From Trichosphaerium sp. ATCC 40318 (taxonomy: Eukaryota; Protista; Tubulinea), in NCBI GenBank assembly GCA_038496445.1, contig JALMLS010000255.1:1-64000 (forward strand): a stretch of 64,000 bases of DNA, given 5' to 3'. Below are positions 4,868 through 39,278 of the stretch, in pieces; within the stretch, counting starts at the first letter, position 1, and each line of letters begins with the position of its first letter. A program made the translations under genes and the position numbers. A model generated the notes under the pieces. That model was not told the DNA's origin. It worked only from the letters and a program-made list of their open reading frames with translations, and ran no database searches.

Positions 4868-5782
4868 TTACTCCTTCAATTCACCGCAATCATCGATAGT
4901 AATGGTTTTTTTAGTCTTACCATGTTTGCTTCCAAGTCTATAAAGGAAAAATCGTTAATTAAACGAACCTCAAAACAGCAGTACGCTGCAAAAGAAAGAA
5001 GAAACAAAAAAAAACCAAAAAAAACCGTCCAAACTGGATCTTTTTTTTTTCTCATCTCAGCGTGTCAATGAGGATCACGTACTTTTCGATGGCTTCTACA
5101 ACCTCCATGCCCTTCGTTACTTTACCAAAAACAACGTGTTTCCCATCAAGCCATTCAGTCTTAACAGTACAGATAAAGAACTGAGATCCGTTGGTGTTAG
5201 GTCCAGCGTTAGCCATAGATAGTGTTCCTGGTCCTGTATGCGTCAATTCAAAGTTCTCATCTTCGAACTTGTTGCCGTAGATGGATACACCGCCTAGGGA
5301 GGGTATTTTAGAGTTTTGGAGACATGGAAACATTTTTTTGTTTAAATATCAGTATTAGTCGTTATTTACCGGTGCCGTTGCCTTTGGTGAAGTCACCACC
5401 TTGTAACATAAACTGTGGGATAACCTAAAGGGAGTTTTAGATAAATCTTGATAAGATTAATTTCTTACACGATGAAACTTGGATCCCTTGTAGTGTAGCT
5501 TCTTGCCGCTCTTTGTGACACCCTTTTCGCCTGTTGTAAAAAAAATTAGAACGTAAAGATACAAAAAGACATCACAAACGCGATCGGAAGGTACAAGTAA
5601 CGTACCGGTGCATAGGCAGCGGAAATTTTCAGCAGTCTTTGGAACAACGTCGGCAAACAACTATAAAACGTTGTAAATCATGATTATAGCGTTGTTTATG
5701 AACTTACTTCCATCTCGATTCTGCCTAGGGCTTTTCGGCCGACTTTAACATCAAAAAATACCTTTGGATTAGATTCTGCCAT
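4868..5782 (-). CDS. Cyclophilin A-type peptidyl-prolyl isomerase (copy 1)
   Basis: Six exons splice to [12 protein letters not shown]...[17 protein letters not shown]...[16 protein letters not shown]...[18 protein letters not shown]...[10 protein letters not shown]...IDDCGELKE*. Confidence 0.97.
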
Positions 5783-6855
5783 TGTGTGAAGGACTGAAAT
5801 ACGAAAATAAGATCGTTGACGTCAACAAGCTGATTTTGTTGCCATTTTTTTTTCTCACCAGAAAATCTCCGTCAAGGCAAGATGCTTCACTCACGCTGTG
5901 ACAACAACATCACTTCAACAGTATAACAATACTCAATCAAAAATTAACCCGATAGTGTCCAACCACTGTGAAGGATTTTTGTAACTACCCGCACGTGATT
6001 TAGCTTCCATGTATTCTAAGAATTTTAAAGGTGCAAGTTTCAATTTATTTACATAACACCAACTAGACCTCCTGTGGCAATACCTCTTGCAACGTTAACA
6101 ACAAGTGAAGATATAGCAATTTCTACAAGGTTGTTAGTAAAGGCACAAGTTCTCTTGGGTTTTAAACTCGTCTACTAACGCCTATGAATCCAAGAGCGTG
6201 AATATGCAACTTAGTTTTATGATAATTTATGCAATATGGTAGCGGATTGTTAGCACTCACCCGTTGTGAGGTACATAACTGGTTTGGAATAGATAACGTT
6301 CTCGTGACATTGTACTTTTTAATGCTAATACATACGACGTTTAGGTTAGCACGTGGAGTAGATCCTGTGCAGCGAGGGAATTGTAAGTTACAATGTATGC
6401 AAAATCTGAAAAAAAGTGAGTTTTCTGGACACCTGAAAGAAAATGCGAAATATACCTCCCTGTTTTCTGAACTACCACAAAAAATATTTGGTTTACTACT
6501 TTGATTAGATAGATCATAGGAAGCCCTAATACGGTTTTACATACAAACCATAGGTACCACTTTTTTTTTGTTTTCAAACGTCACGGACTTAAAACTTAAC
6601 AGATTGTCAATTCTAGTGGGGAGCGGCTACTAAACAAACACAGCCTTCCGTATTAAACCTTGAAACCTACTATGTTTAAATTCAATATAAAGAAAAAAAC
6701 AAAGTCAAGGATGGAAGCGGTAGGACTGTGTGGCCATGGATACGTGATTCTTCGAATTTCAATGCGGTGTTATTGTCACCAAGATTGAAAACGTTAATCC
6801 GTTTCAATGTTTCTCGAGGAAGAGTACAGCAACGAGGTAGTCTTAGAAGTGCATG

Positions 6856-36234: not shown

Positions 36235-37899
36235 TTATTTTTTGATTTTTCTGACTTTCTTTTTTAATTGAGAAGTGTTGCTAATCTTCTTGCGTTTCTG
36301 ATCATTCCTACCTTTTTGTTTTACCCACCAAGATGATATCTGACCATGAACTCTCTTATAATCAAGAACATGCGGGCACGGCTCATCAATACGTGGCTGA
36401 TGTTGATGTTCCGGAGACTTACAGACTTCACAAACACAAGAACGGCAAGTATAAGTCAAACAATAAGGACATAGATCACTATTTGACCCAAAACTTGGAG
36501 AAACACGTGACAACCTACCATTACCATTAATATGAGTAAGTTGCTTTGTAGTGATATCTCCATGTATGGTAGGTTTCTTAGATTTTGTTGGAGCCCACCA
36601 GTAGTTAGTCGAAACACTGAAAGTGTCGCTCACAACAGTGTGAATCTTCAAAAAAAAAAGGTAAGAGAGTCATTTTTGTTTCGTTTATTTGTGTACCCAG
36701 CCTGCTGGTATGTATAGAACATCTCCTGGATTAAGTGTTGTGGCTATAGGCATACCCATTGATATATCTGAATACTTGGTTGACACCAAAGATTCGTTGG
36801 TGATATTCATTTTTGTTTGTCTTTCGTTTTCATGACCAAGTGGGTGCAAGTGAAGGTACTTTTCATCTTCTGGTCTTTGAGAATATGTCAGTGCTATATT
36901 TTACTCTCTTATACGTACTTCCACATTAACACTCGCTTTTTTCCATAGAGCTGGAGTAACAGTCCATCAGAGAGGTCATAGTGAGGTGGTGTGATACATC
37001 CAGCGCCTGATATCCAAATACGTTGTACAAATGGCTCTGGTTTGAGATTGTTGGAAAGGATGTACTCCTCAGGACCCTTAACGCGATCACATATGTAATT
37101 CTTAAAACTATCTATAGCCTCTTGATATATATAGCAAGTATTGCTGGACTGCATACGTTGGAAAGCCTGTTCGAAGTCAGTACAAAAAAAATCACATCAG
37201 CTTTAACTCTACCTCGTTTAGTGTAACTGTTTTGAGTAGTGACTCAACGTTTTTACCTCCTTGGAACTGCCCAATTTCTGATTCATATATCTTTACTTTA
37301 GTACCACCTCCTATGTGCTTCAAAAGCTCAGCTGGAGAGAAGTACGTTTCAAGAGATTTTCTCATTTTTTTAGCAAGTTCTTTCGACATATTTGATACTG
37401 CATTGTTCTCTTCCATTCTACGCTGCATGGTATACGGTTTATTCGCATTAGCTTTCTGAATATCTGCAACAATAGCTGGACCATCAAAATCGCTATCAAC
37501 CCACTTATCATCTTGTCACGAAATGTTAAAAGGACATGGTAAAAAATACTAAGTCAGAACTTCATACCAACTTTAACAGTAAGCAAACACGTTTGGAAAA
37601 TAACAGGTATGCTTTCGCTCTGAGTATTTAAAACGTGCGTGGGAGGTTTATGTTGCCCAGAACGCCTTGTTGCTTCAGTTGCGAAGGTGTACGAAGGTAT
37701 CTGAATAAGACTATTAACAGAACCATTTTAACGCGGAAAGTACCTTTCCAGATATACTATTGGCGATAGTACTGCACCAGGGTCCATTTTTATATTCTTC
37801 TAGCGCCTTCGATCCATAATTACTTATTGGCTTACCACCAGTCATCTGTTCAGCCTTCGCTTGCCATGTATTGAATGTTGGCGAAGCTTGAGCTGCCAT
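36235..37899 (-). CDS. JmjC/cupin-like 2-oxoglutarate Fe(II) oxygenase with Cys/His-rich C-terminus
   Basis: IWISGAGCITPPHYD, QLYGKKRVLMW, LNPGDVLYIPAGWIHTV, SVSTNYWW; HxD...H triad intact. Confidence 0.9.
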
Positions 37900-38175
37900 G
37901 ATTAAATAGATTAGAAATACAGGCTATGGACTTAAGTCTGCGTTGTTGCCACATTCAGAGAAATGTTTTGATCAAACTGCTGTTCATAGTGAACTTCAGA
38001 TACTATAGACAAACAAGCGGCAATACACGTGTTTCAAAATTTATTTTGTTTGCTGTATTGTACATTTCAAAGTTTACCAAGATGTAAGGCATTTTTGTTT
38101 CATTGTTTGTGATGTCCTTTACGAGTATTGTGTGGTTCTAGCGAAATTGATCCGGAAGCATCAATACTTAAAGAG

Positions 38176-38890
38176 TTATATTCTTACACGGGGTGGTCTC
38201 GGATGCATATATCTGTACATCTATAATCGAAAATCAAAAAAGAATCCACGTGTTGAAATAAAAAATTGTTTTTTCTAAACACCTTCAATTGTTCAAGACT
38301 CAATGATTTCTGTATAATGTACTTACAGATACTCCTGCAATTTTAATAACTTTGAAGTGAACACCTCTGCAATCAGACATTTTATGACCAGAGACAAGCA
38401 CTTCATCCTGAAACCGAAGTAAGACAAGATCTGAAAAATGCAAAAGTACAAAAAAAAAAGTTGGAAGCTTTTGAGAATTATCAAGTACGTTTTCATAAAT
38501 GTAACTCAGGCTGCCATCACCCGGAACAAGTGCAACTATATCTACACCATTTTTAATGAGCCTAACATGAACACACTTTCGTAATCCTGAATTTGGTCTT
38601 TTTGGTACAACTCCTCTGTTGAAAACGTGTTAGTCGGTGTTACAGTGCTTTCAAGACGCACATTTTCCTTATGACAATACCTTTAGCCATAGAAGCGCCT
38701 TGGAAAGGATGATGTTTCAATTTTGAAAACAAAACGCGCTGTTTACGCTTTTTAAGGCCCCAGCGGTGCGAAACATGTCGCTTCCTGTTATTCCTAGCTG
38801 CTTTTATGCCTTTGGCACCTTTTCTTCTATTTAAAAGCAGTTAGAATGTGAACAATGCACTCTGCTATTGCTATCGAGTCCGTACCCCAT
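38176..38890 (-). CDS. RPS23-like: Highly divergent 40S ribosomal protein S23 (uS12) homolog
   Basis: Hand-spliced: [13 protein letters not shown]...[86 protein letters not shown]|[14 protein letters not shown]. Last intron less certain. Confidence 0.9.
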
Positions 38891-39278
38891 TGTATTAATC
38901 TTACAAATTTAAACTAATTAATTCAGTTGAAGTTGAGAATAACAGTTTAACGTTATCTGAATTCGGCACACTTTGTACAGTTGTTGTTTCACATAACAAT
39001 GTGCCCTAAACGAGTTTGACAAGCATAAGACAGCATGTTAAATCGATCTTGCGACTAAGGCAGAAAATGTTCTGGATATTGCAAGAATGTTAGAGGTAGA
39101 AGAGACTTTCGTTGTAGTTTATCACAAACTATCAATTCAGTAATATCAGACCTTTTTGCCATTGTTCATTAATAGGGTATCCTTTTTCGCTGTCTTTATG
39201 AATTATCTTAAAAAGGCAAACTGTTCCAGAAAGAAAAAGGAATCACAGTAGAAAGTATTTGTTTTATCAAAGACATTA

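Follow-up and report, generated by a model that had tools for sequence, protein, structure and literature searches.

Does an amoeba that possesses an ordinary gene for the ribosomal protein uS12 (RPS23) also maintain a second, strongly divergent one, and if so, for what? Located at the decoding centre, the protein determines how accurately ribosomes translate. To our knowledge, natural uS12 variants are rare and known paralogs of ribosomal proteins hardly differ in their functional loops. The question is raised by a gene of Trichosphaerium sp. ATCC 40318, located in a stretch of 64,000 nucleotides with 37.1% GC (the window, on contig C14).

Three-frame translation of the minus strand over positions 38100-38950, together with placement of exon borders, resolved the locus into a uS12/RPS23-type gene of the cytosolic type with five exons and four introns (Table 1). 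No stop codon and no frameshift interrupts it. All four introns begin with GT and end with AG, the eight splice dinucleotides and the start codon being undamaged, and CTAAC-type branch motifs are present in introns 1 and 2. The ATGGG GTACG layout of the first exon and its donor is common to this gene and the canonical copy on contig C154. At intron 2, the canonical spacing ...IVIRK-I-GVVPK... is restored solely by the chosen pair of donor and acceptor. Retention of intron 3 would add 27 residues and cause no truncation. Intron 4, when left unspliced, stops the frame eight codons on (...VSTLYRNH, TGA at 38302-38300). The least certain piece of the model is exon 5.

Assignment to the family follows from profile and structure searches. 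Pfam PF00164, used with a cut-off of 22.3 bits, matches exon 3 with E 5e-13 (49.2 bits) and exon 4 with E 4.8e-5 (23.5 bits). In the scan of the whole assembly, exon 3 reached 46.5 bits, or 69.5 bits with its in-frame neighbours. Compared with PDB, exon 3 finds cytosolic 40S S23/uS12 chains at E 1e-12, its best matches all being 40S S23/uS12.

Table 1. Positions of the window paralog, its neighbours and the other loci compared with it. Identity means identical residues, window paralog versus canonical copy.
Feature	Contig	Positions	Strand	Length	Identity	Remarks
Window paralog, whole gene	C14	38890-38176	-			uS12/RPS23 type
Exon 1	C14	38886..38890	-	5 nt		ATG + GG, coding micro-exon, then donor GTACGG
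Intron 1	C14	38827..38885	-	59 nt		phase 2, GT..AG, CTAAC branch-like motif; canonical intron matches in position and phase
Exon 2	C14	38662..38826	-	165 nt	29/54	basic N-terminal extension to ...AKGIVIRK; canonical exon 2 equally long
Intron 2	C14	38616..38661	-	46 nt		phase 2; donor GTGCGT, branch-like GACTAAC, acceptor CAG
Exon 3	C14	38489..38615	-	127 nt	26/42	first decoding loop and OB-fold core to ...SLSYIYEN
Intron 3	C14	38408..38488	-	81 nt		phase 0, no in-frame stop
Exon 4	C14	38327..38407	-	81 nt	20/27	second decoding loop, 5 residues below canonical; canonical exon 4 is 96 nt
Intron 4	C14	38221..38326	-	106 nt		phase 0; donor GTAAGT, acceptor TTATAG; canonical counterpart 102 nt, same position
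Exon 5	C14	38176..38220	-	14 codons + TAA	1/14	rewritten basic tail, length as canonical exon 5
Natural ORF	C14	38629-38303	-	109 aa		exon 3, open intron 3 and exon 4
C2-domain exon	C14	35281-35484	-
JmjC/Cupin_8 oxygenase gene	C14	36235-37900	-			downstream of the window paralog
JmjC pieces	C14	36912-37154 and 36688-36849	-			include HxD motif and GDVLYIPAGWVH strand
Cys-rich C-terminal ORF of JmjC gene	C14	36238-36651		138 aa		no Pfam match
Class C (7tm_3) GPCR exons	C14	43799-44861	+			E 1e-12
Canonical RPS23	G000:C154	44676-45489
uS12m (L004-L007)	G000:C89 and G000:C156	8442-8715 and 4879-5152				identical matches on both contigs
Ofd1/Tpa1-type C-terminal domain PF10637	G000:C1	60966-61403				56 bits
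Metagenomic uS12-like gene (P0147/P0151)	L009	5794-5919 + 5980-6111				within 5700-6115; also L010, L011

A six-frame Pfam scan of the whole 70.3-Mb assembly (G000) detected three kinds of uS12 locus: the window gene, a stronger match on C154, and a pair on C89 and C156. Only the first two are cytosolic, by the Pfam scan as well as with exon 2 of the paralog as query, and the C154 gene is the canonical RPS23. All four intron positions and phases are common to the two genes, and their exon lengths are 5/165/127/81/45 nt in the window paralog versus 5/165/127/96/45 nt in the canonical copy. From the matching introns and the near-equal exon lengths, the window gene evidently arose long ago from the amoeba's cytosolic uS12/RPS23 gene by duplication at the DNA level. 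A processed retrocopy is ruled out by four introns at canonical positions and phases. The gene on C89 and C156 carries the bacterial-type loop TPRKPNSAKRK, by which it is evidently a nuclear gene for mitochondrial uS12m. That it occurs twice is probably due to uncollapsed haplotigs or to a recent duplication.

The window paralog and the C154 copy were compared exon by exon, totals being the summed per-exon counts, and 76 of 137 aligned residues are identical. As a measure of constraint we used 75 columns, in each of which 26 eukaryotic uS12 sequences show 90% or more conservation. Of these, 71 are kept in the canonical copy, whereas the paralog keeps 45, has changed 24 and has lost 6 by deletion, decoding-loop positions among these, and so departs from canonical, decoding-competent uS12 in residues that are near-invariant elsewhere. 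Such losses could equally signal lost ribosomal function. Since 71 of the 75 columns are intact on C154, the window gene is not the only RPS23 of an organism in which all are equally divergent.

The changes are greatest in the decoding loops, the basic extension and the core being kept. In the first loop, canonically EAKQPNSAIRK, EAKQ has become VPKR and PNSA has become PNSG, the paralog thus reading KRPNSG where KQPNSA is expected. From the second loop, AGFGRSGHAVGDIPGVRF in the canonical copy, five residues are missing, and the full-length GFGR-GHAVGDIPGVRF loop is absent; the corresponding 15-nt gap in exon 4 is the sole indel of the gene. IPGVRF has turned into CRGVHF, and the 14 C-terminal residues encoded by exon 5 are unrelated to the canonical ones, at random-level similarity (pN 0.77). 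Codon bias is low as well. Conversely, fold family, gene structure and N-terminal start agree with canonical uS12/RPS23 (eS23; PF00164), and so do the P-N-S tip, VP-DG and the KVIK-AGVS strand. The RW motif, GAS-x-AKGIV, the K-x-P-N-S tip, the loop-2 Asp and VPGDG are all kept. The start is near-identical to the canonical MGRKGARGLKAAR, both proteins beginning MGRKGA..., and the basic N-terminal extension, with exon 2 54% identical to its canonical counterpart, is that of a cytosolic eukaryotic protein. Several lineage-specific residues (RKGA-G-KAAR, LSYI-EN, VIK-AGVS) are common to the paralog and the canonical gene of the host.

What the preliminary description of this DNA had observed in the gene agrees, with one correction, with these results, and its interpretation does so in part. 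It had called the gene intact, intron-bearing and not a retrocopy, which the five exons, the open frame and the four GT..AG introns at canonical positions and phases confirm, and highly divergent, which is evident from the counts above. The altered first loop, the shortened second loop and the retention of PNS and PxDG (as VPGDG) were all recovered. The assumption that the gene is a paralog, to be checked by a genome search for a canonical RPS23, is upheld by the copy on C154. Its statement that the termini are rewritten holds for the C-terminus, with one of the last 14 residues identical, and fails for the N-terminus, which is kept.

Both loops recall bacteria. The E. coli-type S12 loop is GGRVKDLPGVRY and the first loop PKKPNSALRK; compared with these, the second loop of the paralog is of bacterial length and its first loop likewise fits PK(R/K)PNS-x-LRK. 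In contrast, its extension, intron positions and core sequence are of the eukaryotic cytosolic type. Because the remaining gene is so clearly eukaryotic, the bacterial-like loops are read as a product of deletion and convergence rather than of descent.

Next, we looked for relatives elsewhere. With the 109-aa ORF as query, HMMER gave 779 matches among 1.84 billion representatives, and the best matches are all canonical uS12 with 50-63% identity. Among the 779, peculiarities resembling those of the paralog were seen only in two, P0147 and P0115. P0147, a predicted protein of 75 aa, comes from a eukaryotic contig of 13.6 kb (k141_1787901) in the ENA metagenome ERZ4903070, and near-identical contigs occur in two further samples (L009, L010 and L011, three ENA metagenomes in all). 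The organism behind L009 is an intron-poor eukaryote with 37% GC.

The L009 gene is intact. Its first loop is GVLPKPPNHGVRK, and its second exon, DQVLLQRRKPGDIPSVKYKVIKVAGV, has a loop short by the same five residues, MAFFT placing the gap in the same columns as in the window paralog. The two genes also agree in the change from A to P before the first-loop Lys, in PN-x-G, in ALVPGDG and in KVIKVAGV, and RWGL stands in frame upstream of the L009 gene where the window paralog has HRWGL and the canonical copy KRWSE. Unlike the window paralog, the L009 gene has no introns 2 and 4, an extension shorter by nine residues, and PNH for PNS. Over exons 3-4 it is identical to the paralog in 38 of 69 positions and to the canonical copy in 39 of 69. 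No synteny was found between the L009 contig and the window. No JmjC gene adjoins the L009 gene, its neighbours being one gene with RCC1 repeats and one NAD-binding gene, and other genes of that contig show only about 40% identity to the sequences they match best in the Trichosphaerium genome.

P0115 (EukProt TRINITY_DN11340_c0_g1_i1.p1) is a full-length divergent uS12 of 146 aa from a Trinity transcriptome. Its loops read SPNYGLRK and GDRVGVQC (GDRVGVQCKV), the second being of full length, and it keeps 54 of the 75 near-invariant columns. As P0115 comes from a transcriptome, one protist or more must express divergent uS12 proteins. Among 5.8 billion proteins no close relative of P0115 was found, and searching with a profile of the divergent sequences yielded no further members, P0115 standing by itself. 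In the databases searched, no close relative of the window paralog was found beyond the L009-type gene and P0115.

Whether these genes share an ancestor is a different matter. The tree of exon 3 unites the window paralog with L009 (UFboot 91) and places P0115 next to this pair (90). That of exon 4 does not join the window paralog to L009; its support values range from 28 to 69, and the window paralog stands weakly beside its own canonical copy (54). When a degenerate DNA pattern encoding PN-x-G-[LV]-RKCV-x-V-[KR]-L was run against JGI metagenomes, 20 loci were obtained, all of them low-GC archaeal S12. These DPANN-like archaeal proteins (L012-L031) all read PNSGIRKCVRVKL...KELTALAP, and PNSG, V-K-L, the acidic residue after GK and A-L are present in them too. 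The occurrence of the same states in archaeal S12 means that several of the seemingly shared derived states are homoplastic and belong to positions changing in parallel. Common ancestry is favoured by the loss of the same five loop residues. We give perhaps even odds to common descent of the window paralog and the L009 gene within one family of short-loop paralogs; their likeness may also be due to long-branch attraction or parallel change.

Comparison of substitution rates speaks for long-lasting constraint. With Nei-Gojobori counts summed over exons, pS between paralog and canonical copy is 0.83 (saturated) and pN is 0.32, falling to 0.21 over exons 3-4 alone. In a neutral simulation, canonical coding pieces evolved with the base composition of the window and 137 codons were scored for stops. 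With 22% nucleotide divergence, 1.3% of the runs ended free of stops; the share fell to 0.4% with 30% divergence and to 0.08% with 44%, which is the divergence observed between the paralog and the canonical copy. The GC content is 0.40 in the exons of the paralog versus 0.33 in its introns. Low pN against saturated pS, the rarity of open frames under neutrality, the single 15-nt indel and the GC contrast together point firmly to purifying selection on the window paralog over most of its history. The L009, L010 and L011 contigs show only two differences in 1.3 kb, too few for a population dN/dS.

Selection in the past might nevertheless have ceased, and a recent loss of constraint may be compatible with these data. 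The gene would then be an unprocessed duplicate, now silent or recently freed from constraint, that is, a young pseudogene with its frame still open. Several traits are in line with this explanation: 30 of the 75 conserved columns are lost, five residues are gone from a decoding loop, exon 5 is at random similarity to its counterpart, and, according to the first reading, the ORF track does not include the gene. Codon usage is AT-rich and weakly biased, and GC3 is 0.30, the canonical copy having 0.44, a difference that speaks for no more than low expression. A word-index protein search gave no match to the 109-aa ORF; however, the 96-aa canonical exon-2 ORF remained without a match too. The collection evidently lacks the spliced ribosomal proteins of Trichosphaerium, canonical RPS23 included, so the blank means nothing for expression. 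What speaks against a silent duplicate is that none of the stops, frameshifts and broken splice sites of an unprocessed pseudogene is present and pN is far under the saturated pS, that neutral trajectories leave an open frame in at most 1.3% of cases, that even the start codon, the 5-nt micro-exon and its donor are undamaged, and that another eukaryote (L009) has a comparable gene in intact form. As only a recent loss would fit, we consider silence of the gene rather unlikely, while taking it seriously.

As the preliminary description had stated, a JmjC gene adjoins the paralog on the same strand, with pieces recognized within 36688-37154. Single exons of this gene match TYW5, NO66/MINA53, FIH and JMJD5, in each case too weakly for a subfamily to be assigned. 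The JmjC-only group includes hydroxylases of the ribosome and of translation factors. Since no JmjC gene is found at the related L009 locus, the adjacency in the window is probably a coincidence, a possibility that had been raised from the start. The canonical uS12 prolyl hydroxylase is another enzyme: Tpa1/OGFOD1-type enzymes hydroxylate the proline of the P-N-S tip in canonical uS12. On account of the PF10637 match on C1, the Trichosphaerium genome probably encodes it.

This bears on the possibility that the paralog is an expressed uS12-like protein without a role in decoding, such as a placeholder in pre-40S particles, a decoy or regulator of the prolyl hydroxylase, or an extraribosomal RNA binder. 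The tip proline is kept while its neighbours change, an Ofd1/Tpa1-type domain is encoded in the genome, and alteration is greatest in the decoding loops with the basic extension and the core preserved, all of which speaks for such a role. A decoy, however, would have no evident need to keep the whole rRNA-threading extension. We know of no precedent for a uS12 assembly placeholder, and full-text literature searches for one yielded none. We consider a non-decoding role of this sort unlikely.

Retargeting of a cytosolic-type uS12 to the mitochondrial or another organellar ribosome, which the preliminary description had also proposed, fares much worse. In other lineages, cytosolic paralogs did replace organellar ribosomal proteins, plant mitochondrial uS8 being an example (cited in bioRxiv 10.64898/2026.10.06.756942). 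In Trichosphaerium, however, a separate bacterial-type uS12m is encoded on C89 and C156, the window paralog is itself not bacterial in sequence, and its MGRKGA... start is nearly that of the cytosolic copy, with no presequence added. We regard retargeting as very improbable. Least credible of all is a foreign gene, from a giant virus or another source: extensive gene transfer from giant viruses into Trichosphaerium has been reported (PMC10521059), but all four intron positions and the lineage-specific residues are common with the host canonical gene, a scan of IMG/VR yielded no viral relative, and nothing viral-looking lies near it, its neighbours being ordinary eukaryotic genes (JmjC, C2, class C GPCR).

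The explanation we prefer, with a probability of roughly 0.45, is that the window gene is an old duplicate kept by purifying selection and that its product most likely continues to sit at the uS12 site in part of the 40S subunits. The duplication of the cytosolic uS12/RPS23 gene at the DNA level long ago, and the strong divergence of the copy under constraint, are shown by the data or nearly so. Since the extension that threads into rRNA, the OB-fold core, the loop-2 Asp and the K-x-P-N-S tip have all been retained, binding at the uS12 site is suggested, putatively in 40S subunits that are in the minority or form under certain conditions. With its first loop changed and its second loop cut to the length seen in bacteria, the paralog would make different contacts at the decoding centre of such subunits, and these contacts might tune accuracy or interaction with factors. 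Incorporation into the 40S subunit and an effect on decoding are what we infer from sequence only.

A wider proposal may be built on the maintained second uS12. The window gene, the L009 gene and perhaps P0115 might represent an old conserved protist family of second uS12 proteins without the archaeal/eukaryotic loop-2 insertion. During certain life stages or under certain stresses, this family would build 40S subunits of a class of their own, changed in decoding fidelity or in their interaction with factors. The life cycle of Trichosphaerium is complex and multi-stage. We hold this extension to be distinctly doubtful.

How does the gene compare with known duplicates? Pairs such as yeast RPS23A/B, the plant ribosomal-protein families and vertebrate RPL3L, RPL22L1, RPS27L and RPL39L range, as far as we know, from identical to roughly 70-95% identical, with functional loops untouched. 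The window paralog resembles them in that the genome has retained two genes for one core ribosomal protein. Unlike them, it is about 55% identical to its partner and altered exactly in the decoding loops, and its expression is putative. Ribosomal-protein paralogs and the idea of specialised ribosomes are already well known, proposals of specialised ribosomes commonly starting from such paralogs (reviews PMC6467006, PMC10093926). In full-text literature searches, no uS12 paralog equally divergent and altered exactly in its decoding loops was encountered.

The meaning of the locus thus depends on which explanation applies. If the window gene is silent, it is merely an unusually well-preserved old duplicate. 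If it is a maintained second uS12 with a remodelled decoding surface, ribosome heterogeneity would have a natural example, open to experimental test, at the very place where fidelity is decided.
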